64,000 nucleotides of DNA from Hyaloraphidium curvatum SAG 235-1. Lineage: Eukaryota; Fungi; Monoblepharomycota. Each line of letters starts with the position of its first letter. Position 1 is the stretch's first letter. Shown piece after piece: positions 35,525-64,000 of this stretch. The stretch lies in contig JAIVFI010000002.1 in assembly GCA_025558095.1 (NCBI GenBank), positions 1,251,086 to 1,315,085 on the forward strand. Direction: 5' to 3'. The position numbers were made by a program, and so were the translations under genes. The notes under the pieces are model-generated. The model saw only the letters and a program-made list of their open reading frames with translations. It was not told where the DNA came from and made no database searches.

Positions 35525-37375
35525 TCAGTAGGCCAGCAGGTCCCCGAACCCGTCCGCACCATCCAGCAGGCCCTGCAGCGCGCCGTCGGCGTCCACTGTC
35601 CACGGGCCCTCTGCTGCCGCGGAAAGGTCCGCCTTGAGAGGAAAGCCGCCGCCGAGCGATGCGAGATCCAACGAGAAGCCGGCGTCCTGCACGAAATCGG
35701 GGCCCAACGATCCGTCTGCGTCCCACGGGCTGTCCCACGACCCGTCCGCCTCGGTCGCCGTCCCCTCCCTCGACCCATCCTCCCCGGCTTCCGGCGCGGG
35801 CGCCTCCACCGCCCTCCAACCCCCCACGCCCTCCCTCCACGCCCCCACTTCGGCCGCCACCGCCGCCGCCGCCTCCGCCAGCATCGCCGCGGCCCCCCTT
35901 CCCCCCGGCTCCGACGCCAAAAACGCCGCGGCCCGCACCACGGCCTCCATCCCCCGCACCTGCCCCCCCGTCCTCGCAGCCAGCCGCATCCTCGCGAGCC
36001 GGAACTGCCCCGCCGCCAGCGCGGCCCCCGGCGCCGCCTCCCTCCCCCGCACGCCCCACCCGCCCCCCCTGCACGCCTCGATCCACGCGTCCACCGCGTC
36101 CGCCGCGCGCTCCGCGGCCTCGCCCTGCGCGCCGGGAAGGGACATCCGCGCCAGCCCGTCCTCCAGCGCCGCGGGGCAGGGGGTGGGGCAGCGCACGGGG
36201 TCCGTGGGGCCGCGGGGGAAGGGGTTCTGCCAGCATGCGCGGAGGGCGGCGGGGCGCGGGTGCAGAGCGAGGAGGAGGGCGAGGGGGAGGAGGGCGCGCT
36301 GCGTGCGGAGTTCGGGGGAGGGGGAGGCGGGGGGGAGGAGGGAGTGCAGGAGGGCGAGGTGTGGGAGGATCGAGGGGCCGAGGGGGTGGGAGGGCGTGGT
36401 GGGGAGCTGCGCGGCGCGGGCGCACAGATCCAGGAGAACGGCGATGCGGGCGGGGTGCGGGGTGCGGGCCCAGAGCGGGGCCAGGTTGGCGCGGTCGCCC
36501 TTTGCGAGGGCGGCAAGGATCTCGGAGTAGCGCGGGCCGTGCGGTGCGCGGGGCCAGCCGGCCGGCACGCGGAGGTGGTCGGGCACGGCGATCCGGGGAG
36601 GTACGAGGGCGTCCAGGGCAGCGAGGCGGTCCGAGGAAATGGCCACAGCCCACGCCCGGCGCCACTCCTCTGCCGCAGCCCAGGCGGCGGGCGTGGCTTC
36701 CGCAGCGGGGCCCGAGGCGGCCAACGGGCCCTCGCGGACAACCATGCCGCTCAGGGCGCCGGCGAGCAGCGCCAGCACGCGGGCGCGAACCACGGCGGCG
36801 GCGTCGGAGGGGTCCGCAGCGGGGACGGCGGGCTGCGCGGCGAGGAGCACGGAGGCCGCCAGCGCCGCGGGCAGCGGGTCGGCATCGAGCAGGCCGCCGG
36901 CGACGGAGCCGAGGAGTTCGGGGGGCGGTGCGGCGACCGCCTCGCCGGCGTGGTGCGCGGCGCAGACAACGGCGTACTCGACGGCGAGGCGCAGCGCCGG
37001 CGGCTGTGCGGCGAGGGCGGCGGGCGACAGCCGCGCGGGGTGCAGCACCGACAGCGCCGCGAGGCCCGCTTCCCCGAACCCCGCCGACCCGAGGAGCACC
37101 GCCGGCAGCCCCGCGGGCGGCACATTGGGCGGCTGGGTGGGCGCCGCCCCGTCCCCGTAGTCGCACGCCCTCCCCGTCCGCGAGCACCGCCCGCACCGCG
37201 GCTTCGCGCCGTCGCACTTGTGCCGAACCGCCCGGCAGTGGGCGCACGCCCGCGGCGTCACCGTCGCCGGAGCCCGGCGAACACGCCGGGCTGCAAAAGG
37301 CGCCGGCGTCCCCTCCATCGCGGCCGGAGGCAGGTCCGGATGCGGACGTTCCGAAACCACGTGGCTGGGGAGCAT
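35525..37375 (-). CDS. Zn(II)2Cys6 fungal transcription factor
   Basis: ACAHCRAVRHKCDGAKPRCGRCSRTGRACDY; EEWRRAW. Confidence 0.85.
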   Translation of the reverse strand: MLPSHVVSERPHPDLPPAAMEGTPAPFAARRVRRAPATVTPRACAHCRAVRHKCDGAKPRCGRCSRTGRACDYGDGAAPTQPPNVPPAGLPAVLLGSAGFGEAGLAALSVLHPARLSPAALAAQPPALRLAVEYAVVCAAHHAGEAVAAPPPELLGSVAGGLLDADPLPAALAASVLLAAQPAVPAADPSDAAAVVRARVLALLAGALSGMVVREGPLAASGPAAEATPAAWAAAEEWRRAWAVAISSDRLAALDALVPPRIAVPDHLRVPAGWPRAPHGPRYSEILAALAKGDRANLAPLWARTPHPARIAVLLDLCARAAQLPTTPSHPLGPSILPHLALLHSLLPPASPSPELRTQRALLPLALLLALHPRPAALRACWQNPFPRGPTDPVRCPTPCPAALEDGLARMSLPGAQGEAAERAADAVDAWIEACRGGGWGVRGREAAPGAALAAGQFRLARMRLAARTGGQVRGMEAVVRAAAFLASEPGGRGAAAMLAEAAAAVAAEVGAWREGVGGWRAVEAPAPEAGEDGSREGTATEADGSWDSPWDADGSLGPDFVQDAGFSLDLASLGGGFPLKADLSAAAEGPWTVDADGALQGLLDGADGFGDLLAY

Positions 37376-37696: not shown

Positions 37697-38270
37697 CTAA
37701 TCGGAGCACTGCGACGGCGGGCACGCGGACCCCACAACGGCGAACAGCGTGGTCCCGGTCTCTGTGCCCCACGTGCTGCACCCGGTCATGGTCCTGCAGC
37801 TGTTGGCGGCGGTGAACGCGTAGTGCGTGCACCCGGTCCTGCCGGCGCACGCCTGGCTGCAGGCCTCGAGCGAGGTCGCCCCCGCGTGGGTCTGCTGGCC
37901 CGTCGGCTGGCAGCACAGCCTGTTTGCGCCGCAGCTCGTGTCGGAGGCGTAGCGGCGGTACAGCGCGTGGTCGGCGTGCGGGGCGGCGATGCAGGCCACG
38001 CGGTCGGCGGGGGCGCCGGGGTGGGCGAACTCGCTGGGCGTGGGACGCGGGCGTCAGGGCCGCGCGGGCAGCGCCGAGCGCGGCGCACCAGAATTCCCAT
38101 TCCGCGCAGTCGGCGCAGCTGCGTCGGAACACGGCGGGCGGGCCGCCGGCGATGGGCGCGGGCCTGAGGCGGCGGTCAGGCCGAGGCGGGGGCGGCGGCG
38201 CGGCAACCCACGACGCGGCGGTCGCGACGGCGGCGGCGAGCAGGGCGGCGAGCACGAGCTGGGTCCGCAT
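37697..38270 (-). CDS. Secreted protein: signal peptide + 4-Cys dibasic-flanked cassette + PAN/apple-like domain
   Basis: Spliced MRTQLVLAALLAAAVATAA-SPAP...VFRRSCADCAEWEFCEFAHPGAPADRVACI...LYRRY...SLEACSQACAGRTGCTHYAF...C. Confidence 0.75.
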
Positions 38271-38866
38271 CGCCGGGCCGATGGAGGCGGGGCGCCCTGG
38301 GGGGGATGGGGACACGGGTCGTAGGGAAACGGGAAACGAGGGATCCAGGGACGTGCCGTTGCGCTCTGTCCTCCCGAATCGGCAACGCGCATCACTTCGA
38401 GCTCGACGGGCCGGAAAGCCGGCCGGCGCGCGGCGTGGAGCAGCTGGTTTCCGTTCAGGCGGCAGCAAGTGGGCTCGGCGACGACTTTCGTGCGGTCGAT
38501 CCGCGCGGCCTCCAAGGGGAGCGAGCAGTCCCAATGCGCGAGGGCGTCGGGTTTCCGATCGCGTCGAAGGACGCTGCGGCCGGGTGCGTATTTTCTAAGA
38601 AGGGCCCCGGAACGTGCTCGCAGTCCAGCGAAAGCAACGTCAAATCCGCGGGGAAAGAGAATTCGCCTGGCGGAAAGACGTGGCCAAGTTGCGCAGGCTT
38701 GAAAGTTCCTCGATGACCAGCATCAGCACCTCGGAAGGGAACACGGGCGCGTCGCCCGAAGCGCTTTCCGTTATCTGCTCCGTTTTGCTGGAATCCGCGG
38801 CGATCGAGTCTTCAATGAGTCGGACCGGGAAAACCCTTCCCCCGCTTCGTCCAGCTCGCCGCCGAA

Positions 38867-40183
38867 ATGGCTCCCACGGCGTCGGACCTCTCCTCCTTCC
38901 CTCTGCGGACCGCGCGCGTGAATGGCATCGATATGCGTCCGTGTTGTGTTTCGGGCACCCATTGGCGTCCCCGGCTCACGGTTCGGCCGCAGGGTTCGTC
39001 GACGCGAGGCCGGACGGGCGCGAGCTCGGGACGATGATCTTCATCCACGGGTTCCCCGAGGCAGGCCGATTTGCGGGAGCCGAAGTGCCGGTATCTCCTG
39101 ACGTCTCCATCGCCCCAGTCTTGGATGGAATGGCGGCACCAGATCCCGCACTTTGTCGCGAAGGGATACCGGGTCATCGCGCCCAACACCAGGGGCTACA
39201 GTGGGGTCGTTTGCCGATTGGAGGCCGTCGGCGTGTTTTGATGGTCCGTGTGCGCGCAGACAAGGGGGAGCCGCGGCCGAGGGCAGCGGACAAGGAGCTG
39301 AAGAACACGCACTACACTCTGGCCAACGCGGCGCGCGACATGAAGGAGCTGCTGGACCACTGCGGGGTGAAGAAGGCCATCGTGGTTGCGCATGACTGGT
39401 GAGCCTGCCCGGTGTGCACGTTGCCCGGGTCGGACCTCACGTCGGACATCCTGCCAGGGGCGCGGTCCTGTCGATGCGGTTCTACAACCTCTACCCCGAA
39501 TACTTCGAGAAGTACGTCCTCATCTGCATCCCCTACTCCCTGCCGCCCGCGCAGTACGTGCCGATCGAGGAGGCGGCAAAGGCCGTGAAGCTCCTGAACT
39601 ACCAGGTCTACTTCAACTCGGACAAGGCCGAGGACGAGCTCAACGAGCAGACGGACCTCTTCATCAACTTCTTCTTCTCCCGCATGACCCGCGATTTCCA
39701 GAGGGGCATGGACATGATCACGCCGACCTTCGGCGTCATCGACTCGGCCAAGGCCAACGGCTACCCGCGCAACGACTGCCTCCTCTCCGCCGAGGAGATC
39801 GAGGCGTACAAGAAGCACATGCGGGAAATCGGGGGCTGGGGTGGGCCGCTCCAGTGGTACAGGATGGGCGAGACCACCTACCGGGATTTCAACGACGGGA
39901 GGAAACTGCAGCTCGAAGTGGAGGTCCCGCTCCTCTTCATCGGCCCACAGTTCGACTCCCCATTCTGGAAGGGCGCGGCGAGCGACGCGATGAGGAAGCA
40001 CGCCAAGGACCTTACGCTCAGGGTGGGTTGGACCGAAGCTCGGCGCGGGTTACCTCTCACCCCGGGGACGAGCAGGAGATCGCCAAGGCGGGGCACTGGG
40101 TGGCATACGAGAAGCCGGACGAGGTCAACGCCATCATTTCGGAGTGGCTGGACGCCCGCGCCGCGGCGGAACCGAAGATGTGA
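38867..40183 (+). CDS. Epoxide hydrolase-like alpha/beta hydrolase (spliced, includes a GC-AG intron)
   Basis: FIHGFPE-SWMEWRHQI, AHDWGA, GPLQWYR, GHWVAYEKPDEVN. Confidence 0.9.
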
Positions 40184-40244
40184 TGCTCGGACTCTGTCGT
40201 TATTGATTCCATGACGTGAAGATGCCATGTCTTCCCGAGCGATC

Positions 40245-43124
40245 CTACGCCGCGGGCTCGCCAACAAAGAACCACGGGTCGCCCTTCCCCTTTGCCCCAA
40301 CCTCCACCCTCTCCTCGGCCACGTAGTCTTCCCACTTGATCCCGCGGTCCCGCATCAGCCTCTCCAGGTGGGGCAGCACCTCCTCCTCGGGCACGAACAG
40401 GGCAAAGTCCAGCGCCGCGTACACCTGGAACTCGGCCGCCTTGACCATCTGCTCCGTCACCCCGAGCTCGTCCTCCATCCGCGAAAACAGCTCCGTGAAG
40501 TCCGTGTTCTCCTTGCTGTCGTTGATCTTGACGGCCAGGAGGAAGCACGCCGCGGCGACGAGGCGCCGGTTCAGCTTGGCCACGCGGCGCTGCGCGACCA
40601 GCTTCTCGAAGTAGACGAACGACATGGCCGCGCTCGACAGCTCCAGCCCTTCCTCCATGGCCACGTCCACGACCTTTTTCTTGATCGAGCGGATCATCGA
40701 CAGCGTCAGCGTCGGGTCCAGGTCCGGGTGCAGCGAGCGGAACTGCTCGTTGATCTCGTCCTTGAGCTCCCGCCGCGGCGCAAACTGGATGATGGAGGAG
40801 AGGTACGACGGCAGCGCCATCACGGTGCGGTGCTTGCCGGTCCGGAGTGTGGGGTCGTCGAGCGCGAAGGGGTTGTACCGGCTGTAAGGAACGGTCGGCG
40901 TCCTTGCCGGGTCCGCGGGTCCCAGCATCCCCGTGCTCCGCAGCGCGGCGGCGAAGCTCTCGGCCTTGATCCGACCCTTCTCCATGCCCGCGGCGGTCAT
41001 CTGGCCCGGCAGGTACGAGCCGATCAGCACCGGCTGGCCGCCGCCCGTGGTGACGACGCCCAGAAGCCCCTGCTGCTGGATGGTCGGCACCGCGACCACA
41101 GGCACACCGTCCACCTCGTCCTCGAACTGCGCTGCCGACGACGGCCGTGCCTGCGTAGCCGGGGTGACCGTGACCTTTGGGCCAGCCCCCACCCTCGCCC
41201 GAGGCGTCCCCGGCGGCACCGAAACATCGTCCGCCGCCCTCCTCCCCAACCTCCCGACGCTCCCGACCCCCGCCTGAACCTCCTGCCCTCCCCCCTCCGC
41301 CCTCGCCCTCCTCTTTCGCACCTCTTGCCCTTCCCTCGCGGTCCACCTCCGCACGGAGGACACCGCCACCGGCCCCCCGGGGGGGGCAACGGTCCACACC
41401 GGCCGCCCGTTCGTGAGCTCCGCCACGAGCCCCTTTCCCGGGGTCCGCAGGCCGCGGCCGGGGACGATGAGCACGTCCTCCTCGCCGTCCCTTTCGGCGG
41501 GCCGCAAAAAGGGGGTGCGGTCGTCGGGGGGTTCCACCGCGGTCGGAAAGTCCGGGGCCGGCTCGCCGGGGTCCGACCGGCGCCGCTTGCCGGGGGGTTG
41601 CTCGCCCAGTTCCAGGTCCTGCGGGGGGAGGGAGCGCGAGCCGAGCATGGAGAGGGTGCGCCAGAGGCCTTTGAAGCCGGCGCGCTTTGCGGCGGTGGAG
41701 ACCCGGGCGAGGGCCGAGGTTTGCTCGGGGGTCTGCACGGGCGCGGGGGGGATGTTGATCACCGTCGACGGGGCCAGCGGCTGCGTGGGGCGGGGGCGTT
41801 CGGCTTCTGCGGTGGTGGGGGCCGGCGTCGGGGGCTGCGAGGTGACGGTGGGGACGGCAGAGGTCACCGACGGCGCCGAGCTCCCCGAGCCGGCCGAGCC
41901 CGTCGACGCCCTGCCGACCGTGCCGGATGCCCCGGCACTCGAAACGCTGCCGCGCTTGCTGTCCGGCCCTTGCCCGACGAGGCGCGACTTTTGCGCGGCG
42001 GCGAGCATCGCCGCCTCGTTCCTCAACCGGCTGATGGCGGGGCTGGTAGGCAGCGAACCCGCCAGCCGCGTCCGCAGGGAGGCGGGAAGCGCGTCCGCGA
42101 GCGAGCCCGCGGCTGATTCCGTGACGGCAGAGGAAGGCACGTCCGTGGCCGGGGTAGCAAGCCCCATGGCGGAGAAGCTGACCGGCTCCGGCTCGCGGAA
42201 CCGGAACCGCGTGCTGCGCGACGACGCCGAGCCCCTCCCGGAAAACGCCGGCCTCACGCGGCGCCCTGCGCCCCGGTCCTCGATTTCGGTGAGGTCCGGC
42301 TCGTCGGCCGTCATGCTCTCTCCGTCCTCGCCCGCGGCGGCCTGCAGCTCCGCGCGGCGCTCCTCGAGGGCGGCCCAGTCGATGCCGGCCTTGGAGGGCA
42401 CGCCGAGGGAGATGGAGGAGAGGAAGTCGACCGCGGCACGCTCCTTGGGATTGAGCTGGGAGTACGTCCGCTTAAGGCGGGGCGGGGCGGGATCGGGGAG
42501 CGGGGCAAGCGGGGCCAGTTGCGAGCCCGGGGTGAAGATAATCTCGCCGAGGGAGGAACGCCGCCGCCGTGCGGGGGGCAGGACGAAAGTGTCGGTGGGG
42601 GTGCTGTCCGTGCCAGGCGCGGTGTGGGAGTGGGGCAGGATGCGGAGCCGCTGGAGCGGCGGGCTGCCTGAGCGGGCGGAAACGCCCGAGAAGAGGGACG
42701 TCGGCGACATGGGGGAAAGCGGGGAGGTGACCGGGCCCCCGTCGTCGCCCTTTAAAGCCACAATGATATCCGGATCCGAGGTCGACAGGCTCGAAAGACT
42801 CGACATGGCCGAGACGGGTTGGGCACCCGGGGGTTTCGAGCCCGACGACGTCCGGCCCTTTGTCCGCGTTCTGCCCTCCGAGGCCTTCCCGTCCACCACG
42901 CCGATAGTCTCCGGCGCAACACCCGAAGCCGAAGTTTCCTTTTTGTCGGGGATCGGGGGCGGTGGCCGGCCGTGCGGGCCGTACGGGAGCGGCTCGGCCG
43001 CCGACGCGTCGCCGTCCAATGCGGCCGCCGCGGCGCCGTCCGGGCGGGGCGGCCGACGATCGGGCGGCTCCACAGCATCGTTTGACGCGTCCCCAGACGC
43101 CTGGAGTGGGTCTGCGGACGCCAT
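40245..43124 (-). CDS. CABLES-like (CDK5 and ABL1 enzyme substrate) cyclin-fold protein
   Basis: YNPFALDDPTLRTGKHRTVMALPSYLSSII, LKDEINEQFR..HP, LTLSMIRSIK, FVYFEKLV, NRRLVAAACFLLAVKIND. Confidence 0.85.
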   Translation of the reverse strand: MASADPLQASGDASNDAVEPPDRRPPRPDGAAAAALDGDASAAEPLPYGPHGRPPPPIPDKKETSASGVAPETIGVVDGKASEGRTRTKGRTSSGSKPPGAQPVSAMSSLSSLSTSDPDIIVALKGDDGGPVTSPLSPMSPTSLFSGVSARSGSPPLQRLRILPHSHTAPGTDSTPTDTFVLPPARRRRSSLGEIIFTPGSQLAPLAPLPDPAPPRLKRTYSQLNPKERAAVDFLSSISLGVPSKAGIDWAALEERRAELQAAAGEDGESMTADEPDLTEIEDRGAGRRVRPAFSGRGSASSRSTRFRFREPEPVSFSAMGLATPATDVPSSAVTESAAGSLADALPASLRTRLAGSLPTSPAISRLRNEAAMLAAAQKSRLVGQGPDSKRGSVSSAGASGTVGRASTGSAGSGSSAPSVTSAVPTVTSQPPTPAPTTAEAERPRPTQPLAPSTVINIPPAPVQTPEQTSALARVSTAAKRAGFKGLWRTLSMLGSRSLPPQDLELGEQPPGKRRRSDPGEPAPDFPTAVEPPDDRTPFLRPAERDGEEDVLIVPGRGLRTPGKGLVAELTNGRPVWTVAPPGGPVAVSSVRRWTAREGQEVRKRRARAEGGGQEVQAGVGSVGRLGRRAADDVSVPPGTPRARVGAGPKVTVTPATQARPSSAAQFEDEVDGVPVVAVPTIQQQGLLGVVTTGGGQPVLIGSYLPGQMTAAGMEKGRIKAESFAAALRSTGMLGPADPARTPTVPYSRYNPFALDDPTLRTGKHRTVMALPSYLSSIIQFAPRRELKDEINEQFRSLHPDLDPTLTLSMIRSIKKKVVDVAMEEGLELSSAAMSFVYFEKLVAQRRVAKLNRRLVAAACFLLAVKINDSKENTDFTELFSRMEDELGVTEQMVKAAEFQVYAALDFALFVPEEEVLPHLERLMRDRGIKWEDYVAEERVEVGAKGKGDPWFFVGEPAA

Positions 43125-43558
43125 GTCCGCGCCGCCCGTGGGCGGTTGAAAGGCAAGGTGTTTGCTGCAAACCATCAACCAAAAACCAACTTCCTGGAGC
43201 TTTACCGCCCGCTGGAGCTCCTGGGGGCAGTGGTACGCTTCCTGACGCGCCCATCGCTGCCGCTGTTCTGCTTCGCGACTGCGGGCCGCGCTACGTACAG
43301 AGATCAAGAACGCCGAGGCGAGGATCGTGGCCGCTGGCCTGCCTCAACCACCTCCGCAGCGCCCGACCCCGGCCGGTAGCCTCCCCGTGCTCGCCTGCTG
43401 AGCTCCGCGCCGTGCTCGAGCGCGCGGGGTTGAGCAACCCCGCCCTGGAGATCGTGGCGACGGGCCGGGGGCGCTGGAGTTGCCTTACGTGGGCCACCAC
43501 TGCAGATTGGTTTGTAATGTCATTGCCGATTGCATTTGGGGATTGCAGTGCGCGATGA

Positions 43559-44370
43559 TCATGTCGCGACACAGCACCCTGCAAATGACCCCGCGGTGCT
43601 CGCCGGGCCCGAGTTCGAGCACTTGTAAGCGCCGGAGGTCGTCCCTGTCACGGCCCCGGTGGCCGCCTCGCAGTAGACCGTCTTTCCGGCGGTTTCGGCC
43701 GTGACCAGGACCGCCTCGCCGCCCGAGATGCACAGCTTGTACACCTGCTGGCACACCAAGGGCTCCAGGAGCAGCGACGGCACGCAGCAAGTAGCACCCG
43801 AGGTGGTGTAGCACACACCCGAGGTGGTCGTGGAGCCCGTGGCGGTCGGATGCCCGGTGCCCATGTGGCAGGCGGTATACTGGGCCGCGCCGCCGTCGCA
43901 GAGCTTGCTGGTGGGGTAGGCGCCTAGGATGTCCGAGTTGGGGCAGGCGCCGTTGGTGGGCGAGGTGTAGCGGCGGTAGAGCGCCCGCGGGCCGGCGGCA
44001 GCATTGTAGCTGACGCAGGCGACGGAGTCTTTGGGGCCTTTGGGGTAACCGTACTCGCTGTGGGTCGTGGGTCGACGGTCAGTGGGGCGGGCCGTCAGTG
44101 CCTGTTGGCTTTCTGCCGGGGGGACGCAAAGGTCCCACCAAAAGGAGGCTTCAGCGCACTCGGAACATGAACGGCGATAAATGACGTCGCCATTGTCGAG
44201 CATCGGCGCAGGACTGCGGTAAGGGCGACGCAAGCGGATGAGGGACGTGCGGCCCCGCGGTAATGCGCGGCGCGACTTTACCTCGCCGAGGCCGCGGCCG
44301 CGAAGAAGGAGAAAGCCGCGAGGAGGCTCACAGCCACTGCGGCAGGAAGCGAAAGACGGAAGTGTATCAT
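43559..44370 (-). CDS. Secreted Cys-rich protein: signal + 4-Cys cassette + two 6-Cys repeats
   Basis: Spliced MIHFRLSLPAAVAVSLLAAFSFFAAAASA-SPAP...IYRRSCSECAEASFCEYGYPKGPKDSVACV...LYRRY; 12 Cys after the second RR. Confidence 0.8.
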
Positions 44371-44964
44371 TGCTGTAGATTTCTGGGTGTGTGCGTCACC
44401 TCACCGTCCTTCGGCGGGGCGGAGATTTCGCTCGCACCAGCCCGGGCTCCGGAATCTTCGCTTGCGAAGATTTTCACATCCAATCACACGATGTGAGCCC
44501 ATGGCAAAGCATTGGTTTGAGCTCCCAAACCCCGCACATCCGTTCCAGACGCCGTTGGAATGCAACTCTGCAGCTACGAGTTTGCCTCGGACGTGAGCGG
44601 GGCACGGCCGTACAGTGCCAGGTCGTGACCGCCGTGCCCGCAGCCCCTGGGAATAACGAAGCACGGCCTGCCACGCAGCTTATTAAGAAAGAGTGCTCCC
44701 TCAGGGACTTCGTTCCGCCGCGACGAACTGACAGCTGTTAAGGGGGGCGATGGGCTCCCTCCGCAGCCCGCTCCCGGAGAGGGCTGGGCATGCGGGCCAG
44801 CTCGGGCTCGGAGACGGTCACCTCCATTGCGGACTACATTGGGGAGCAAAAGGACGAATGCACCAGAACACTCGGATGCGCGTTCGAGACGAGAGACCTG
44901 CCGGCAGGATCAGATTGAACACCCGGCAGTGCTCGACGTCCACCAACAGCAGAACGACTATTCC

Positions 44965-45735
44965 TTAGGAGAAGGCGGTGCAGCACCCCGCGATCGACCC
45001 CGCGGTCGTTCCCAAGGCCCCGTCACATATGGCGGAGCCCGTGTTGCCGCCTGTCACGGCCCCCGTGGATGCATTGCAGTAGATCGGCTGTCCTGCGGTC
45101 GCGGCTGTGTACAAGGCCGCGTCGGCTCCCGAGGTGCACAGCTTCTCAGTGCCGCAGGTGCCCTGCAGGACCGAGGCTGGCATGCAGCACACGGCGCTCC
45201 CCGCGACGCACACGCCGGACGCGGAGGCGGCGCCGCTAGCGGGGGCGAGACCGGTGGCCATATCGCAGGCCGCCCACTGGCCGGAGCCGGAGGCGCAGAG
45301 CTTGCTGGTGGGGTAGGAGCCGGTGATGCTCGCGTCGGTGCAGGCCCCGTTGGGGGCGTCGGCGTAGCGGCGGTAGAGCTCACTGCGGGTGCCGGCGCGG
45401 TCGTAGGTGATGCAGGCGACGGAGTCCATGGGGCCGCCGGGGTAGCCGTACTCGCTGTGCGTCGTCGGCGGTGCGTGGGCACGTTGGCGTTAGCTCGAAG
45501 GCGGGCATCCCGGCAGCGAATTCCCACCAAAATTCGGCGGCATCGCATTCGGCACATGCCCGGCGGAAGATGACGGAGGTCTTGTCGAGTGGCGCGGGGC
45601 TGCGGGCGCAGATGAGGGACGCGCCACCAAAACGGTCCTACGCCTTCACCTTGCGGAGACGACAGCGAAAGAGAGGGAGAGAATTATGGCCACGAGGCCG
45701 ACGGCCTTGACGGGCAGCGGGAGGGAGCTGGGCAT
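44965..45735 (-). CDS. Secreted Cys-rich protein, tandem paralog of 43559-44370
   Basis: Spliced MPSSLPLPVKAVGLVAIILSLSFAVVSA-SPAP...IFRRACAECDAAEFCEYGYPGGPMDSVACI...LYRRY; the same 12 Cys. Confidence 0.8.
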
Positions 45736-46749
45736 GGTTGTCGTGGTGATGAGGGTGAACACGTCGCTCGGCGATGCCCGCCGAGGGTCTCCCTACTGGC
45801 TCGGAAGCGAAATACACGACGGTGTCGGGCGGCATTCCCTCCCCCAATAACGGGACGGCCCCGCGCCCGGCAACAAGAAGTCCACTTTCAAACCTTTGGG
45901 ATGCGGCCTCTCATCGGCGGAATCGTGCGCAAGGGACCGGCTGGATCCATGGGAGACGCGGGGCGCGCAGCAACATCTCTGCCTGGCGAATGCAAGACAA
46001 CCATCCGCCAGACGAACTTATTTCCTGCTGCATTGACACCATCGGAGCCGCAACCGATGATCGACATTTTCGAGACAAAGGCGTAACGATGCTGACGCGA
46101 GCCCGCGACCAGGGCCCTGTGTCGGGGGCGGTGGGATCGGGTGAAGAAGGCAGACTATTACGCCAAGGCTATATCTCGTTGTGGTCTATTCTTTCCATGG
46201 TTTACCGCTACGATTTGATGTAGGCCATGGGTCCTGCCCGGGACCGGACTCACGGCCATTGCACCATCCGGATCCTGGCTGACTCGGTGATGTACAGGCG
46301 CGTCCTCGCAGCGTCGTACGCCAGGCGGTACGTGCTCTTGAACATCGTGTTGGCTTCCGACGGCGGCAGGCTGTCCCCTGCGAAGCCCGAAGGGCCGCCT
46401 GTGGCCCGTCAAGGAAATGACCACGTGATGCCGGACGGATGCCGCGGAACGAGGAGGTGCTGCCGCTGCGCGCAGAGGGCTTCGCGCGGTGGGCCGAGAA
46501 GCCAAGAGCCCAGGCAACCGCGATCCGTTCGCGGAAGAGCCGCACAAAGCAGAGTAAAGACCATCGAGGTTCACGGGCTGCCCATCGCGGCCGCCAATCC
46601 CGGGGTCTGGATGCGCCACATCTCCGAGGAGAAGCGCGAGAAAGAGTCAGAGACAGCGCTTTCTTGGAGCTCGGAGCCGTCAGACTGGTCGCCCGGGTGC
46701 GATCAGAGTGTTGATGGAAGTCACCCGCTCTTCTATGCTCTTCGCGAAT

Positions 46750-47994
46750 CTAAAGCTTCGCCTTCACGTTCTCATTCTTCTCCCCGCCCGTCCTCTCGGC
46801 GCGCAGGGGCAGCACCTCTTCGTTCCAAGGCATCCTCCTCCCCTCCCTCCCCCGCGGCGGCGGCTCGAAGCCCATCACCCACGACCTCCACGTCCTCGCC
46901 ACGGGCTCACGCGGCCGGTAGAACGGGAACATGTCCGCATCCTCGAGCCCACTGGGGATGGTGCCGTCGGCGAGGAGCGGGTCGAGGCACCCGGTGTCGG
47001 CCAGGATCCCACGCACACGCCCGCGCGCGGCGTCGGGGACCGCGGCAAGCCGCGACTGAAGCTTCTCCCTGCACCACACGCGGAACTGCACCGCCGGCAG
47101 CCCGCGGTACGGCCCCCAGTCGAACGACGCGCGGCCCTCCCGGAAGGCGAGCGCGTCGGCGCGGAGGTAGGGAAGGTACCACTCCCCCACCCGGCGAAGG
47201 AGGGGCAGCCACGTGTCGGGGATCTCGCCCGGCGGGGCGCAGGGGACGAAGGGGGTGCCCGTGGAGGAGGGGCGCGAGTTCCAGAGGCGGGCGACCCACG
47301 CGTACACCGCGGGCGCCCGGCGGCGCATGATGCCCGCGGGGGTGGGGTCGATGGAAAAGTGCCGGAACATGGGGCCGGCGAAGCCAAAGTCGGCCAGGGT
47401 GGGGTGGGTGCCGAGGAGGAAGGGGTGAACTTGGAAGTGGGCCTCGAGGGCGTCGAGGGTGTCGGTATACATGAGCTCCGTAAGCTCCTTGGCAGCGGCG
47501 TCGCGGATCCCGTCGCCTGTGACGTACTCGGAGAGCTGCCGCGTGATGACCACCCGGTGAACGAGGAAGTCGGGGATCCGCAGGTCCTGCAGGAACTCCT
47601 TCCTGAAACGCGCCGCGTTGAGCGACCGGTCGGGCTCGAACGCCCAGCGGTAGTACAGCGCCGGCCGCCACAGCGACTCGTCGGCGTAGTCCTCTAGCAG
47701 GAACGAGAAGAACGCGTGCACGGGGTCCTCCGGCACCACAGGGAGCGACACGCCAAGCTGGCCCTCCAAATACACGATGATGCTCGTCGAGTCCTGCAGC
47801 CACTTGTCCGCAAGGCGGTCGTACAGCACCGGGACCTTCATCTTGCCCGTGTTGGGGAGGATTTCGTCCACGAGCACCTTGCGCGTCGGCTGGACGAACT
47901 CGTAGGCGATGCCGCGGTACCGCAGGTAGCACTCGAGCTTGCCGGTAAAGTACGAGATGTCGTAGCCGTAGAGCGTGTAGCGAGGAGGCTCCAT
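46750..47994 (-). CDS. Glutathione S-transferase-like protein, intronless
   Basis: LYGYDISYFTGKLECYLRYRGI, KVPVL, DSTSII, LLEDYADE, FLLGTHPTLADFGFAGPMFRHF. Confidence 0.85.
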   Translation of the reverse strand: MEPPRYTLYGYDISYFTGKLECYLRYRGIAYEFVQPTRKVLVDEILPNTGKMKVPVLYDRLADKWLQDSTSIIVYLEGQLGVSLPVVPEDPVHAFFSFLLEDYADESLWRPALYYRWAFEPDRSLNAARFRKEFLQDLRIPDFLVHRVVITRQLSEYVTGDGIRDAAAKELTELMYTDTLDALEAHFQVHPFLLGTHPTLADFGFAGPMFRHFSIDPTPAGIMRRRAPAVYAWVARLWNSRPSSTGTPFVPCAPPGEIPDTWLPLLRRVGEWYLPYLRADALAFREGRASFDWGPYRGLPAVQFRVWCREKLQSRLAAVPDAARGRVRGILADTGCLDPLLADGTIPSGLEDADMFPFYRPREPVARTWRSWVMGFEPPPRGREGRRMPWNEEVLPLRAERTGGEKNENVKAKL

Positions 47995-48450
47995 CGTCGG
48001 TCGGCGAGGGGGAGACAAAAGGAGAGCTGAAGCGAACGCGGTCGACGCGGCCGATCAAAATCGCCTCGCCGTCTCCTGGCCCATCTGAGCGGAAACAGCT
48101 ACCTCCCGAGCTAGTCTGATCGAATTTGGACCGTGTCGCTCGCCCGTGCCGGCTGGCACGACGCGGTTTCGGCGTGGAGCCGCACCGGGAAAAGTCCACC
48201 TGCTACAAGGCGCGACGCGTCCTCTGGCGCCTCCTGGGCGTCAACTTCGAATTTTCTCGCGGACGGTGCGGTCAGGTTGCATGCGTCGCCGCGCGAGGAC
48301 ATGTAGTGCGCCTCGGTGCGCTGAATGCGTCTGTGCGGCCGGCGCGGAGAGCAGGCGAGCGGACCCACCCGTGCTGGACTGCATATGCCGCACGGTCAGG
48401 AAGGAGCAGGATGGGTGTTTTGGCATCGCAAGATACCCTCTCTTCCACAG

Positions 48451-49702
48451 CTACTGAGCGATGTAGCCTCCATCGACGATCACTGCCGCTCGGAGTCAGC
48501 ATCTCGCACCGTCGGGGGCGGTCGCCGCCCACCTTCGCTCCCCGTCATGAACGACGACTCCTCGCTCCCCAAAAACACGACGACGTCCGCCACCTCCTCC
48601 GGCCGCCCCATGCGCCCGATCGGGTGAGAGGCGACGATCGCGGCCGCCGTCTCCCGGTCGATGCCGGGAGCATGGGGGTGTCGATGGCTCCCGGATGCAC
48701 GCTGTTGCAACGTACTGCGCAATCATTGCAGGGCATCAATGGGATGGAGTTGAAGCTGCGATCGGGGGCCCACTGTTGTAACCGCTCCCGGCGCAGTGCA
48801 GCGCGAAGCTCTTGGTCATAATGCGCGTGCCGCCTTTGGATGCCGAATCTTTGGCGAGAACAAGGCTGGTGAGCGAGCAGGACTCACCGACTGCCGACAA
48901 AGGTGACGGGACCCACAGGCGGTGAAAGTAGAGAACCCGACGATGCCGGCGACCGAGCTGGCGGTGATGATGCTCTTTGACTCCCTGGCCTGGACGAGGT
49001 CGTGAGCGCGGGAGATCGCCAGCGATGAGGAAACGTCACCTTGTTCTGCTTCATCGACCGCACGCCCCACTTGAGGGCGAGGAAGGTGCCGACCCTGGCG
49101 GGAGAGGCGCTTGAGCAACAGGCCAATGCGCGCGCTCAGCTGATGACACCAACAGGTTGATATCGATGGTGTGCTTGAAGTCCTCGACCGCCATGTTCTC
49201 GGGGTTGGCCTTCGTCTTGGCGATCGCTGGAAGGCGGATGTCAGTTGCGGTCGGTCGTATCAGACCGCGAGGGCCCACGCACCCGCGCAGTGGACCAGGA
49301 TGTCGAGCGGCCCGAGCTGCTTGTGCACCCTGCTTAGGCTCCTTTAGCTTCGTCCCGCACGTTCCGCACGACCGGAGCACCCACTCCTCGATCACCCTCT
49401 CCCACTCGTCCTCCCTGGCCACGTCGTGCTCCAAAACCACCACCTTGGCCCCCTCAACCTCCCCCTTGATCTTTTCGGCGACCTTGAGTGCCAGCTCGGC
49501 CTGGTGCGGCAGGTCCGACACCGCCACGTGCGCGCCGGCTCGGGCAAAGGCCAGCGCGGTGGCGGCGCCGATTCCCGAGGCGCCGCCGGTGCTGCTGGCC
49601 GCCGACGTCAGCGCGGGCAAACGAGGGGAGGAGACGGGCCCACATGAGGGCGACGCGGGGACCGGTGGCGTTGACGAGCCGCTGCGAGAGGGCGGGGGGC
49701 AT
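48451..49702 (-). pseudogene. SDR (3-beta/17-beta-HSD or cyclopentanol-DH-like), spliced, with an apparent frameshift near 48670
   Basis: TGGASGIG, spliced [22 protein letters not shown] then frame change to ...[13 protein letters not shown]...[10 protein letters not shown]. Confidence 0.7.
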
Positions 49703-50288
49703 GGTGCGGTGATTCGGCGGGCGATCGGGCGGTGACTCCATCCTGGAACCGTCGAACCGAAAGGGCATCCCGTTCCTGCCATCCACACGAATTTCAATAC
49801 AACAAACGACATCGACCTGCGTTCTAATCGTCGGTTGTCTGGTTGTCGACGGGTTGGTGGACGACGGGTTGCTGGACGACGAACCCCTCCACCTCCGCGA
49901 ACCCGGGACCCGGCTGCCTCGACGGGGTTCTAAAGCAGCGGACCTGCGACTGCCTGGCCGACGCCCCGCCAGCGCCGTCCCCGTCCGTCGCGTACCCATC
50001 CCCGTCCAGCTCCTCATCCCCGGGCACCCCGCCGTCGCGGACCTCGAGCTCCGCGAGAGGTGCTTTCCAGGATGGCAAGCACGGTGCCGCCCGACTTGTC
50101 AATCGGCGAGGCTTTGGGTGATGCAGAGCTGCGAGAGATTCGGCATCTCCTGCAGCGCCCTGCCCAGGTCCTCCAAATCGTCGCGACGCGGTCCCCTCGA
50201 GGTCGACCCGCAGTGCAGCGCGAGCCGGTCCCCGGGGAGCCCCACGATCCTCGTTCCGCCCCATCGTCCCCTGCGTCGACGCATCCCA

Positions 50289-51383
50289 ATGGCGACCGAC
50301 CACGGCTACCTCGACGCCTCCGCCTCCCTCTCTTCCACCTCCCTCCACCCGCCCCTCGCCGCCGTGGCCGCCGCGTCGCGCCTGTGCCGCAAGTCGCTGC
50401 ACGTGCGGCTCTCCCTCCCCGCGGAGCTGCTCGCCGCGGAGGGCATCTGGGACGCACACTGCTGCCTTGCGGAAATCTACGCGCACGCGGTGGATCCGCG
50501 TAGGCCGCTCCTGCGCGCCTACGTGTGGATCGACGGGGTGTCGGCGGACCCGCTGCTCGGGGGGCCGCTGCACCGCGGGGCGGATGAGGGCGACGATCAC
50601 GCGTACTTTGCTACCGACGGCACGCCCGATGGCATTGTCGACGGTGTCGACGCGTCTTCGGCCGGCCGGACCGCGGGCCGGGTTGACCTGGACGCCTGCA
50701 ACGCGTCGCGCTCCGCCGCCGGCCTCGCCCCGCTCCGCCCCCTCCCCGTCCCCCCATCTCCCCCCGCCACCGTCCCCCGCACTTCCTGCCCGTGGCCGCC
50801 CTCCCTCCTCGCCGACCCCGCCCCCGCCGTGGCGACCGGCGGCTCCTTCGACCAGCTCCACGCGGGCCACCTCCTGCTGTTGAGCACGACCCTGCTATTG
50901 GCCCGCACGAGGGCGGAGGTCGCCATCGCGGACACGGCGAGCGCGCCGGGGATGCGGGAACTGGCGGCGGCCAAGGAAGCCGCGGCGCACATCCAGCCCG
51001 CGGAAGTGCGCGCCGCCGCCGCGCTGGAGTTCGCCCTCCGCTTCCGCCCGGGCATCCCCACCGCGGTTCCCGTCTGCGTCGACATGGCGTTCGCGGCCGT
51101 GGAGGCGCGGTACTTTCTCTGCACCGCCGAATCCCGCGGCACGATCGCCAAACAGGCCCCCGAGCGGCGCGCGGCGGGGTTGGAGCCGTTCGTGGGTGTG
51201 GAGTGCCTCGTTATCGCCCCCGGGAGGGTGATGCACGGAATAGCGGACGCGGCGGAGCTGAAGGGGGGAAAGTGGGGGGCCACGGTGATTAGGAGGCACC
51301 TCGAGGCGGGGGCGGCGGGGGCGGGCAGTGGCGGCGGGGCGGGAGGGACAGAGCCGGGGGCACGTGGGGAGGCGCAGCCGTAG
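50289..51383 (+). CDS. Nucleotidyltransferase (HxGH) protein, phosphopantetheine adenylyltransferase-like
   Basis: ATGGSFDQLHAGHLLLLS; IQPAEVR; C-terminal KWGATVIR is divergent from the usual KxSST. Confidence 0.65.
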   Translation: MATDHGYLDASASLSSTSLHPPLAAVAAASRLCRKSLHVRLSLPAELLAAEGIWDAHCCLAEIYAHAVDPRRPLLRAYVWIDGVSADPLLGGPLHRGADEGDDHAYFATDGTPDGIVDGVDASSAGRTAGRVDLDACNASRSAAGLAPLRPLPVPPSPPATVPRTSCPWPPSLLADPAPAVATGGSFDQLHAGHLLLLSTTLLLARTRAEVAIADTASAPGMRELAAAKEAAAHIQPAEVRAAAALEFALRFRPGIPTAVPVCVDMAFAAVEARYFLCTAESRGTIAKQAPERRAAGLEPFVGVECLVIAPGRVMHGIADAAELKGGKWGATVIRRHLEAGAAGAGSGGGAGGTEPGARGEAQP

Positions 51384-51432
51384 ATCGCCGGGGTGTGTGG
51401 AGCCCCCTGGACCTCCGCGGACGGATCCGCAA

Positions 51433-52318
51433 TCACAAGACGCCTGCGGCCCCCAGTCCGAACAACGCCGCGGCAGCAGCGCCGGCCCAGCCCGCGCCGA
51501 CCCTCCCTCCCGCGGCGGGCTTGCTCGACGTCGTCGTGCTGGTGGTCACCACCGCCGTGGTCGACGCCGGCGCGGCCGTTGAGGTGGCAGTCGGTCCGGC
51601 CGTCGAGGTGGCAAGAGATGCCGACGCCGTCCTCGTCGCGGTTGCCGTTCCCGCCGCAACCACCTCGCAGCCCCCCTTGGTGCTCACGGTGAACCCGCTC
51701 GTGCACTTGTCCCCGAACTCGTAGCCGCCGCCCAGCGGGATGGAGCACGCGTCGTCCTTGTACAGCGCCACGGTGCCGTTGCCCGCGCCGCCGCACGAGA
51801 CCTTGCTGGAGGAGGATCGGGGATCAGCGCGGCCGAGGGGCGAGGCGGGCGGCGGTGTTACCCGTAGTACGAGACGCCGAAGAGGAACGACAGGTCCGCG
51901 CACGAGCCCGAGCGGAGCGCGAACCCCGCCACGGCGTCGGCGCACCCGGTGTCCTTGAACGCCTGGCCGACGAGGTCTGCGCGGGCGGGGTGCGGGATCA
52001 GCCGGTGTGTGCGATCGGGGGCGATCGTCGCGGCCCACATGCGCCCGATGTGCCCGGCGGCAGCGCGGTGCCGGGGTCGGCGGCGGAGCACGTGGCGTTG
52101 ACGGAGGTGCCGCCGTCCGACGCGCAGCCGTTGGTGACGGACGAGTTGAGGAAGGTGCAGTCCGGGTACGGCTTGGGGATCACGACGAGCGCGGTCGCGT
52201 TGCCGGCGCAGCTGCCGCCCGCGAACGTGGCCGTGGAGAGGAACACCGTCGCGACGGCGGGCGCCGCGGCGAGCGCGAGGAGAAGCAGGAGAACGGCCAG
52301 GCGGGCCGCAGTTGGCAT
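51433..52318 (-). CDS. Secreted, probably GPI-anchored Cys/Thr-rich cell-surface protein (spliced)
   Basis: Signal peptide; repeated Cys units (F..xC.G); Thr/Ala tail; hydrophobic C-terminus. Confidence 0.75.
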
Positions 52319-53036
52319 CGGAAGTTGGCGCTGGGCGGAGGGCGCGCGGGGCGGGTTGTGGAGCGTGTGGCGGTGGCGGCAGGGGGGGGCGGGAGATCAC
52401 GTCCGGGTTTACGAGCCCGGCGGAAGATCCCCTCGGGTCTGGACCACCGTCAGCGCCCCCATGGAATAGCGTTTCGCTGGGCCAATCCTTTCCCAATGGC
52501 TACCGCAGTGGTACCTTACCTACGGTGGGCGGGCCTTTTTGCGCCTCGCGAATGGGCTGGAGGTGTCCCGGTCCGGTTCAGCTATCGCGGACACGGTTTC
52601 CGAATACCGCCGTCCACCGGACAGGGCTCCGCTGCCGAGGATCTACCACGATTCACTATCCAGGAATGCGGTCGCACTCCTGCGAGCAGCTCGGTCGACG
52701 TTGTCTGATCTTCATGGATTTCGGTGTTCGGATCTGGGGGAGGCTCGGGACGCCGGTGACCCACGCCAAGATTCCGTGCCGGACTAAGCTCTCTGCACGA
52801 CGAAGAGGGACCCTCGTCCGCAAGGCGACAGCTCGATGAGCCATTGCCGATCCGCCCTCGACGCGTGCGGCTTATGCGGCAGGGGCAGCCTGCATATCCT
52901 TCGGAGTAAGCATCCCCTGTTTAGGGCCTTCGGCGCGCGCGCTCACTCGGGCCCAGATAGACATTCCCATCCCCCGTTGACTCCGCTCCGAAGCATCGAG
53001 AGACGATTCGCACGGACCCAGCTCCCAATTGCCAAA

Positions 53037-54467
53037 ATGACACGTTCAAGAACAACCGGCCTCGGGGCCGCGCTCGCTGTCACCGCCGCCCTCGCCGCCC
53101 TCTCCGCCCTCGCAATTGCGCCGCCCGCCGCGGCGAGGTGCGTCCCCCCGCCCGGCGCCGTCCCTTCCGCACGCCCCTGATCCCGTCGCCCTCAGCCCCC
53201 TCCTGTTGTGGGAAACCGAGGCGCCCGGGACCGGCGACCACACGGTGTTCCGCCGCTCGTGCTCCGAGTGCGCCGAGAGTGACTTCTGGTGACCCGACTC
53301 CCGCGCCGCGCCCCTTTCTCCCCGACCGCCGCCGCTGCAGCGAGGTCGGTGTGGCGGGGGCCCCGGAGGGGCACGTCGCGTGCGTCGAGTACGGGACTTT
53401 TGGGCACCTGTACAAATGGTGGGTCCGTCTCCGCGCCGTCGCCGCCCGCGGAACCATCGACCCCACGGCGCATCCAGATACGTCACGACTCCCATCGTGT
53501 CGACGTTTGCCGGCACGGGAACCGGGGGAAACGACGGCGACAACGGCCAGGCCACCGCGGCGCAGGTCAACCCCCGCGACGTGTGCCTGGACTCGAGCGG
53601 CAACGTCTACTTCACCTCATTCACCACGCACGTCGTTCGCAAGGTCGACCCAGACACGGGAGTCGTCACCAGGGTGGCCGGGACCGGCACGGCCTCGTAT
53701 TCCGGTGACGGCGGGCAGGCGACGACAGCCTCAATCTTCAGACCGCAGCAGTGCGCCTTCGACCCGTCCGGCAACCTGCTGTTCGCGGACTACGGGAATC
53801 ATCGTGTCCGCAAGGTCGACCTCGGTACCGGCATAATCACGACCATCGCCGGCAACGGTTCGACCGGCAGCGCTGCCGACGGCAGCGCTGCGACCGCGAC
53901 CGCGGTGGAAAACCCCATGGGATTGGCCGTGGGCGCGGACGGCACCGTATACATCTCGCAGTTCCCCGGCGGATGGATATTCAAGGTTTCCGGCGACGTC
54001 TTGTCGAAGATCGTCTACGTGAACAGCCCCACCGAAGCAAGCGGCTACCTTTCGCTGTACGACAGCACCACCCTCCTCGTGCCGAAGCCGTACAGCAACA
54101 AGGTCTTTCTGCAGCCCATCTCCGGAGCCGCCGCGACGCTCTTCATGGGCAGCGGCGACAGCATCACCCCCGGGGACGGCGGCCAGGCCATCGCCGCATT
54201 CATCAACATGCCGGAGGCCACGGTCCGTGACGCATCCGGCAACACATACATCACCGCGTACGGGAACCACAGGATCCGCGCCGTTACCCCCGGCGGGATT
54301 GCCTCCACATTCGCGGGGAACGATACCCAGGGCTACTCGGGGACGGCAAGCCGCCGTCCCAGGCCGAAACCATGCTCAGCCGCCCCTTCGGGATCGCCTA
54401 CGACGCCGCGAGGGAAAGGCTGTACTGGGCAGAGGTCGGAAGGATCCGGATGGTGCAGTGGCCGTGA
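53037..54467 (+). pseudogene. Secreted protein: signal + 4-Cys cassette + NHL-repeat beta-propeller; splice-created TGA and a 1-nt frameshift
   Basis: VFRRSCSECAESDFCEVGVAGAPEGHVACVEY..LYK*Y; NHL repeats (VAGTGTASYSGDGGQA...DPSGNLLFADYGNHRVRKVD); the G-run at 54339-54342 is one G short of GYSGDG. Confidence 0.75.
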
Positions 54468-63816: not shown

Positions 63817-64000
63817 TTAGGTTAGGTTAGGCTAGGTTAGGTTAGGTTAGGTTAGGTTAGGTTAGGTTAGGTTAGGTTAGGTTAGGTTAGGTTAGGTTAG
63901 GTTAGGTTAGGTTAGGTTAGGTTAGGTTAGGTTAGGTTAGGTTAGGTTTAGGTTAGGTTAGGTTAGGTTAGGTTAGGTGAGGTTCGGTTGTTAGGTTAGG
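63817..64000 (+). repeat. Telomere, (TTAGG)n, about 36 units
   Basis: G-rich strand runs to the window end; a few variant units (CTAGG, TTTAGG, TGAGG, TTCGG). Confidence 0.95.

Follow-up and report, generated by a model that had tools for sequence, protein, structure and literature searches.

A conserved cysteine-rich leader precedes unrelated payload domains in a large, subtelomere-enriched gene family of Hyaloraphidium curvatum

Conotoxin superfamilies combine a conserved signal and pro-region with a hypervariable, Cys-rich mature part, placed after a basic site for processing, and they form large, fast-diversifying families. The RxLR-dEER and CRN LxLFLAK effectors of oomycetes carry a conserved leader after the signal peptide followed by diverse, interchangeable C-termini; these are also large families, located in dynamic genome regions. 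The K2PP effectors (SnTox3, ToxA, and SIX1/4/6) consist of a signal peptide, an N-terminal pro-region ending in a Kex2-type motif, and a mature protein that is often rich in Cys, and the KEPs (class 1 in the same source) are secreted fungal precursors with tandem peptide repeats separated by KR sites (PMC8528282). Here, we describe a family of genes of the early-diverging monoblepharid fungus Hyaloraphidium curvatum whose products share an N-terminal leader, formed by a hydrophobic segment, a four-Cys cassette, and the motif L-Y-R-R-Y, joined to payload domains that are unrelated to one another. Four members (g1 to g4) lie in the 64,000-nucleotide stretch analyzed here (the window), which is the last 64 kb of contig C2 (C2:1251086-1315085; contig size, 1,315,085 bp).

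The gene models were obtained by reading and translating both strands, the joined translations being used for frame checking only. All four genes were found at the positions and on the strands that had been proposed for them (Table 1), with a common architecture. Their products run from a hydrophobic N-terminus through SP(AP) to the cassette [VI][FY]RR[SA]C..C.....FCE....P..P...VAC[IV], which is followed by 8 to 10 residues and LYRRY, with g4 departing from this layout at its last part. Every intron in g1 to g4 is of the GT..AG type and 48 to 81 nt long. As anticipated, intron 1 interrupts a Ser codon in phase 2 at the end of the hydrophobic N-terminal segment in the four genes, and intron 2, also in phase 2, falls within the codon of the third Cys (TG/C). 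The g2 model is residue-for-residue identical to the public H. curvatum protein model P0057, and five paralogues that lack intron 2 encode a contiguous F-C-E; both agree with the predicted TG/C splice.

We searched the whole 31.9-Mb H. curvatum genome exon by exon with profiles of the two exon halves of the cassette (A1 and A2). At E<0.001, the A1 profile matched at least 146 places (best E value, 8e-17), a lower bound with 150 of the 165 candidates scored, and the A2 profile matched 131 at E<=10; these numbers greatly exceed what chance would give. A third profile built from five intron-less cassettes (A3) was compared with 1.84 billion representative public proteins and returned 90 matches at E<=0.001. 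The cassette is present in 88 of these, and the two weakest are unrelated repeats (one ENA record and one from Branchiostoma). With at least 146 genomic places and 88 public clusters, the original prediction of a modular system of secreted proteins extends well beyond the four genes on which it was based. All ten family proteins checked by name (the eight most divergent of the true A3 matches and two further ones) come from H. curvatum, and, judging from these sequences, the leader so far appears to be specific to this organism.

The family amounts to at least about 150 genomic copies and is enriched in subtelomeres. Our locus-level catalogue holds 80 loci, about 70 of the ~150 copies. Among 63 copies on 16 contigs of known size, 48 are no more than 130 kb away from the end of a contig (34% expected) and 24 no more than 50 kb away (13% expected; Kolmogorov-Smirnov test, p=7.5e-11). 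Considering that the window closes with a telomeric (TTAGG)n array, g1 to g4 sit 9 to 26 kb from the chromosome end.

In pairwise comparisons of 57 gap-free cassette coding sequences, mean amino acid identity was 0.625 in the cassette and 0.083 in the 30 residues after the motif. Identity at the 4-fold synonymous third positions of the cassette was 0.536, versus 0.485 expected from base composition. Since these synonymous sites are near saturation and the protein has been kept, the similarity reflects purifying selection on the protein and not recent homogenization of the DNA. This result bears on a possible trivial origin, namely, that the 5' module common to these genes does nothing by itself and is a passive subtelomeric repeat, a gene conversion tract, or an annotation artifact with many dead copies. 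The concentration near contig ends, the broken frame of g4 (see below), and several copies whose open frame past the cassette is very short would fit such an origin. However, the conservation of amino acids next to nearly saturated synonymous sites, the intact frames and Cys-rich payloads of most copies, and the conserved intron positions make it very improbable. Cassette identity is 0.549 within payload classes and 0.519 between them, and the nearest cassette belongs to the same payload class in only 14 of 47 members. These nearly equal values indicate a family-wide constraint and argue for a shared partner over payload-specific coevolution.

The anatomy of the leader was counted in 106 unique cassettes. 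The core is C-x2-C-x5-C-x13-C (x5 in 97 and x13 in 100 of them), and the distance from the fourth Cys to the Leu of the motif is variable, mostly 8 to 10 residues. There is a single N-terminal cassette per protein (the few rows with two stretches are retained-intron models), starting at residue 25 to 45 in most of 78 models, and a hydrophobic N-terminal segment, assessed without a SignalP-type prediction, is present in 66 of 68. Of the downstream sites, 75 read exactly LYRRY and 96 are dibasic, and the P4 position of the matched motifs is Leu in 103 and Ile in 3. At the upstream site, P3 is Phe in 100 cassettes, P1 is Arg in 97, and P1' is Ser in 86, but only 64 carry a dibasic pair (RR or KR) there, while 22 have AR and 5 have VR. 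The cassette had been described as flanked by dibasic pairs; across the family, this description fits the downstream side in most members and is not general for the upstream one.

AlphaFold2, run on a 74-sequence cassette alignment, predicted three strands (VIYR, FCEY, and VACV), with a mean predicted local distance difference test score (pLDDT) of 91, 86, and 87 in the three 10-residue blocks of residues 11 to 40 and of 57 to 62 in the LYRRY region. The picture was similar when the paralogue P0043 was modeled in full length: pLDDT was 87 to 93 in the cassette (residues 31 to 70), 55 in the segment DAHALYRRYE (71 to 80), and 84 to 97 as block means in the PAN domain (81 to 165), where it exceeded 90 except at the C-terminal end. 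According to these models, the downstream motif is in the linker between two domains, and the upstream pair falls in beta-strand 1 (pLDDT of about 90), where it would be part of the fold and not a processing site.

One of the two readings first offered for the family was that both basic sites are cut, so that every precursor frees the same ~38-amino-acid peptide, starting S-C and with two disulfides and an activity of its own, plus a variable payload. Both flanks have indeed the form [aliphatic]-[aromatic]-x-R, the upstream site keeps its P1 Arg in 97 of 106 cassettes and is dibasic in 64, and some nonbasic P2 residues are tolerated by Kex2 (PMC8528282). On the other hand, a cut at the upstream site would remove a confidently predicted strand, 40% of the members are nondibasic there (27 of the 106 cassettes have Ala or Val at P2), and a nearly identical peptide produced from about 150 genes would be highly redundant. 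With the upstream pair often nondibasic and located within strand 1, the evidence favors a cleavable folded leader over a free 38-amino-acid peptide, whose release we consider improbable.

The cassette does not correspond to any named domain that we could recognize, as had been suspected. Searches against Pfam gave no match to it with four contiguous members at E<=1, and nothing covered it with 89 members at E<=0.01. A profile search of PDB sequences found no cassette match at E<=1. With the predicted structure, Foldseek found nothing significant in the PDB (best E value, 3.8), all cassette matches of the ESM Atlas shape search had TM scores below 0.5, the Atlas feature search gave no usable match, and a wide VIA-align search reached a best Z of 2.9, below the meaningful level of the tool. 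The nearest structural neighbors of the model are beta-defensin-like folds, three-stranded disulfide mini-proteins represented by helianthamide (4x0n_B; root mean square deviation, 1.8; Z, 2.9) and ATX Ia (1atx; 2.9; Z, 2.0), with 36 residues aligned and both Z values under that level. These proteins have three disulfides, versus two in the cassette, and lack sequence similarity to it. In the paper library searched, the string LYRRY was found only in one unrelated paper, of 1944, and no paper joined Hyaloraphidium with "secreted" and "cysteine-rich"; the leader family appears to be undescribed so far.

Kex2 recognizes Arg at P1, Lys or Arg at P2, and Leu or another aliphatic residue at P4 (PMC8528282), and the downstream L-Y-[RK]-R agrees with this motif at the three positions. 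The H. curvatum genome has three loci in which a P_proprotein domain comes immediately after Peptidase_S8, the arrangement of kexin/furin-type convertases (Table 1). Given the match to the Kex2 motif, the position in a predicted linker, and the three convertases, a folded leader cleaved by a kexin is the best-supported reading, and we consider it somewhat more probable than its negation. In all members, the leader comprises, in this order, a signal peptide, a short Pro/Ala spacer, a mini-domain of ~31 residues with two disulfides (F-x-R-S-C-x2-C-x5-C-E-[FY]-x-[YF]-P-G-x-P-x3-V-A-C-V) for which a sheet of three strands is predicted, a variable linker of 8 to 10 residues, and L-Y-[RK]-R-Y; unrelated payloads follow. 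The folded leader would act as a common pro-domain that meets one shared partner in the secretory pathway, which could be the convertase itself, a factor for folding or disulfide formation, or a receptor for export or sorting. A kexin/furin-type enzyme, one of the three encoded in the genome, would then cut after L-Y-R-R, and the payload would be released with an N-terminal Tyr.

Several observations weigh against this proposal. The Tyr residues at P3 and P1' are conserved beyond what recognition by Kex2 needs, and Kex2 makes no contact at P3 (PMC8528282). The pro-domains of described K2PPs are said to lack secondary structure (PMC8528282), whereas this leader is predicted to be folded and to contain disulfides. 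Dibasic sites are not depleted in the payloads, as they should be if a dibasic protease encountered them, but enriched (28 observed versus 13 expected), although this count is not decisive either way. The extra Tyr conservation, the folded leader, and the undepleted dibasic sites keep alive a rival in which the cassette is a retained, uncleaved N-terminal module that, like a dockerin, tethers or docks diverse secreted proteins to one extracellular target (cell wall, matrix, or scaffold), with L-Y-R-R-Y as part of the binding surface. A module confidently folded by AlphaFold2, with a motif whose Leu and two Tyr residues are kept past the requirements of a dibasic protease, and with an identity independent of the payload class, would be expected under this alternative. 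Nevertheless, the models place the motif outside the folded core, in a linker of low confidence, its P4, P2, and P1 residues fit the consensus of Kex2, and the cassette resembles known binding or docking modules neither in sequence nor in fold. We regard retention of the cassette as conceivable but doubtful.

What follows the leader is highly diverse, as originally proposed: BLAST grouped 84 payloads into 38 clusters. The most represented are PAN/apple-like payloads (14 members, plus several 8-Cys singletons), 12-Cys payloads of the g2/g3 type (11), and 6-Cys payloads (7), followed by Ig-like payloads and an unnamed type of ~180 amino acids (5 each), Stig1-like and EGF payloads (3 each), and NHL payloads (2). 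An M8 leishmanolysin-like protease and an ALK/LTK Gly-rich domain are among the singletons. Matches to VIT1, thioredoxin, and adh_short domains appear to stem from public models fused with neighboring genes. In the window, the g4 payload exceeds the Pfam cut-offs for NHL (36.8 bits; cut-off, 20) and TEN_NHL (60 bits; cut-off, 27.1), and those of g2 and g3, tandem paralogues, are 49% identical (E=7e-31) and both have 12 Cys. The NHL assignment and the 12 Cys residues of the original prediction were thus recovered; its division of the latter into two repeats of 6 Cys was not, as BLAST gave no support for an internal duplication (E=3.3). The g1 payload is likely to be PAN/apple-like: it scores 17.5 bits against Pfam PAN_1, below the cut-off of 21.4, a domain detected at E<=0.01 in 7 of 89 members, and almost all of the best Foldseek matches of the model of P0043 (a related paralogue, not g1 itself) are PAN/apple chains (FXI, the HGF N domain, plasminogen, and TgMIC4), with probabilities up to 1.00 and E values of 0.08 to 0.6. 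In the Ig-like payloads of P0001, P0002, and P0052, equivalent positions are occupied by the recurring tetrapeptides L-A-R-R, L-R-R-R, and L-L-R-R, and payloads contain the pattern [LIVM]x[KR]R more often than expected (10 observed versus 2.2 expected); from their sequence, the recurrent sites may be further processing sites.

The intron structure was followed through the family by exact spliced alignment of 39 public models to genomic DNA, 32 of them with a recognizable cassette. Intron 1 occupies the position equivalent to that of g1 in 24 of the 32, always in phase 2. The split codon varies: it encodes Ser in 12 of the 24 and G, R, P, A, V, T, L, or C in the others, usually with Pro next. 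Intron 2 falls in the codon of the third Cys in 27 of the 32 models, in phase 2 in 24 and in phase 1 in 3. In genomic DNA, 71 copies were examined, of which 64 derived from the locus catalogue have a resolved cassette junction. In six of the 64, intron 2 has slid by one base (T/GC, phase 1; L026, L011, L025, L071, L068, and L053), and in five it is absent and F-C-E is contiguous (L059, L043, L072, L073, and L030). Since these five paralogues read through F-C-E, they provide independent, evolutionary support for the TG/C splice. The family is a clean instance of intron sliding and intron loss at the codon of the third Cys. Some members have an additional intron near the motif, whose position and phase vary: it is in phase 2 in the second Arg codon of L-Y-R-R in g4 (window positions 53417-53478), in its NHL paralogue P0082 (L039), and in P0005 (L073), and it lies 1 to 6 codons downstream of that codon in P0030, P0014, P0055, and P0040. 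As introns 1 and 2 and this phase 2 junction intron, where present, share the same phase, the leader exons are frame-compatible with exon shuffling, for which these phases are suggestive only.

Part of the family is misannotated in the public models. Intron 2 is retained in frame in P0056, P0078, P0080, P0082, and P0087 (F/Y-W replacing F-C-E), and P0011, P0041, P0051, and P0075 are fused with neighbors that carry thioredoxin, VIT1, or adh_short domains or with a long N-terminal protein.

The copy in g4 is disrupted. With the family-typical splice, an in-frame TGA is formed across its intron 3 (TG at 53417-53418 and A at 53478) directly after LYK, in the place of the second Arg codon of the motif in the paralogues, as had been noted from the sequence. 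In addition, the frame is broken in the last NHL blade (Table 1), and the length of the coding sequence modulo 3 is 2. Selenocysteine insertion or read-through at the TGA was rejected because of this second lesion. The public model of g4 (P0073) skips the stop and the frameshift by means of two 68-nt GT-AG introns, the second of which cuts out conserved NHL blade sequence. From its reading frame, g4 is probably a pseudogene, a decaying copy of the family, although an assembly error at a G-run is a possible source of the frame lesion.

Genes of ordinary type are found between the family members in the window (Table 1). The terminal array of the contig contains about 35 tandem 5-nt TTAGG units with few variants; the telomere repeat expected for fungi is TTAGGG, and TTAGG may be that of H. 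curvatum. Elsewhere in the genome, some copies on different contigs form pairs with identical scores (C30:62504-62641 and C48:18053-18190; C17:634135-636601 and C47:80898-82070), an appearance consistent with recent segmental duplication or with haplotypes that were not collapsed.

Table 1. Coordinates of the leader genes and other features of the window (positions in the window), and of the convertase loci on other contigs
Feature	Position	Strand	Details
g1	37697-38270	-	Exons 38270-38212, 38163-38089, 38033-37697; leader cassette and PAN/apple-like payload
g1 intron 1	38164-38211	-	Phase 2; separates signal peptide exon from cassette exon
g1 cassette core	37949-38132	-	VFRRSC..C.....FC/E...VACI...LYRRY; LYRRY at 37963-37949
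g1 intron 2	38088-38034	-	Phase 2, TG/C codon; splits cassette core
g2	43559-44370	-	Exons 44370-44282, 44213-44139, 44057-43559; leader cassette and 12-Cys payload
g2 intron 1	44281-44214	-	
g2 intron 2	44138-44058	-	
g2 cassette core	43967-44185	-	LYRRY at 43981-43967
g3	44965-45735	-	Exons 45735-45650, 45599-45528, 45454-44965; tandem paralogue of g2
g3 intron 1	45649-45600	-	
g3 intron 2	45527-45455	-	
g3 cassette core	45364-45574	-	LYRRY at 45378-45364
g4	53037-54467	+	Exons 53037-53137, 53196-53288, 53341-53418, 53478-54467; leader cassette and NHL-repeat payload
g4 intron 1	53138-53195	+	
g4 cassette core	53245-53481	+	LYK at 53408-53416
g4 frame disruption	54331-54350	+	Last NHL blade, near 54343-54346; FAGNDTQGYSG, then DGKPPSQAE in another frame
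Ordinary gene	35525-37375	-	Zn2Cys6 domain
Ordinary gene	40245-43307	-	Cyclin N-terminal domain
Ordinary gene	46750-48018	-	GST domains
Telomeric (TTAGG)n array	63817-64000	+	End of contig C2
Convertase locus	C21:105681-107026		Peptidase_S8, then P_proprotein directly
Convertase locus	C17:595286-596761		Peptidase_S8, then P_proprotein directly
Convertase locus	C33:286159-287678		Peptidase_S8, then P_proprotein directly

If the leader is indeed a cleaved, folded pro-domain placed on ~150 unrelated payloads, an early-diverging fungus would have, in this leader, a natural system for tagging proteins for secretion and processing. It would also supply a defined domain and motif with which to dissect how a class of cargo is recognized by the secretory pathway, and a clean case for the origin of modular, subtelomeric families resembling effectors outside pathogens. 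In practical terms, one 50-residue profile identifies a large unannotated share of the Hyaloraphidium secretome, a family that open reading frame tracks and several public gene models (those with a retained intron 2 or fused neighbors) conceal or distort. A bolder version of the proposal, which we think rather unlikely, is that the cassette is a eukaryotic "universal leader," a folded disulfide address domain that would route ~150 unrelated secreted proteins through one receptor or processing station, might itself be released as a common signaling or antimicrobial peptide, and would have acquired its payloads by recombination at the leader/payload junction.

Among the systems that the family resembles, the leaders of the oomycete effectors are short linear motifs for delivery into a host, whereas here we find a Cys domain, predicted to be folded, together with a dibasic motif. 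We know of no host for H. curvatum, which we take to be free-living, and the label "effector" is unproven for this family. The precursors of conotoxins have the same layout and also belong to large gene families; however, these are animal families without sequence relation to the Hyaloraphidium leader, and, to our knowledge, their pro-regions are not disulfide-bonded mini-domains. Furthermore, the payloads described here include large domains, such as the NHL propeller, the M8 protease, and Ig-like repeats.

The fungal systems are closer in some respects. KEPs are also secreted fungal precursors with a dibasic Kex2-type site, but our family has one N-terminal cassette per protein and no tandem repeat units. 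As in the K2PP effectors, the leader occupies the N-terminal part after a signal-like segment, and a Kex2-type motif (KR/RR or LxxR, with an aliphatic P4) marks the end of the pro-region. The pro-domains of the described K2PPs, besides being described as unstructured, are not mutually homologous and are rich in disorder-promoting residues (PMC8528282). In contrast, a single conserved domain, with a predicted folded core (AlphaFold2 pLDDT of 86 to 93), is common here to about 150 paralogues with unrelated payloads, in an early-diverging fungus, and its cleavage is suggested by the sequence of the motif. The family follows the design of precursors with a signal, a pro-domain, and a dibasic site, and is distinguished among them by the shared folded leader domain.

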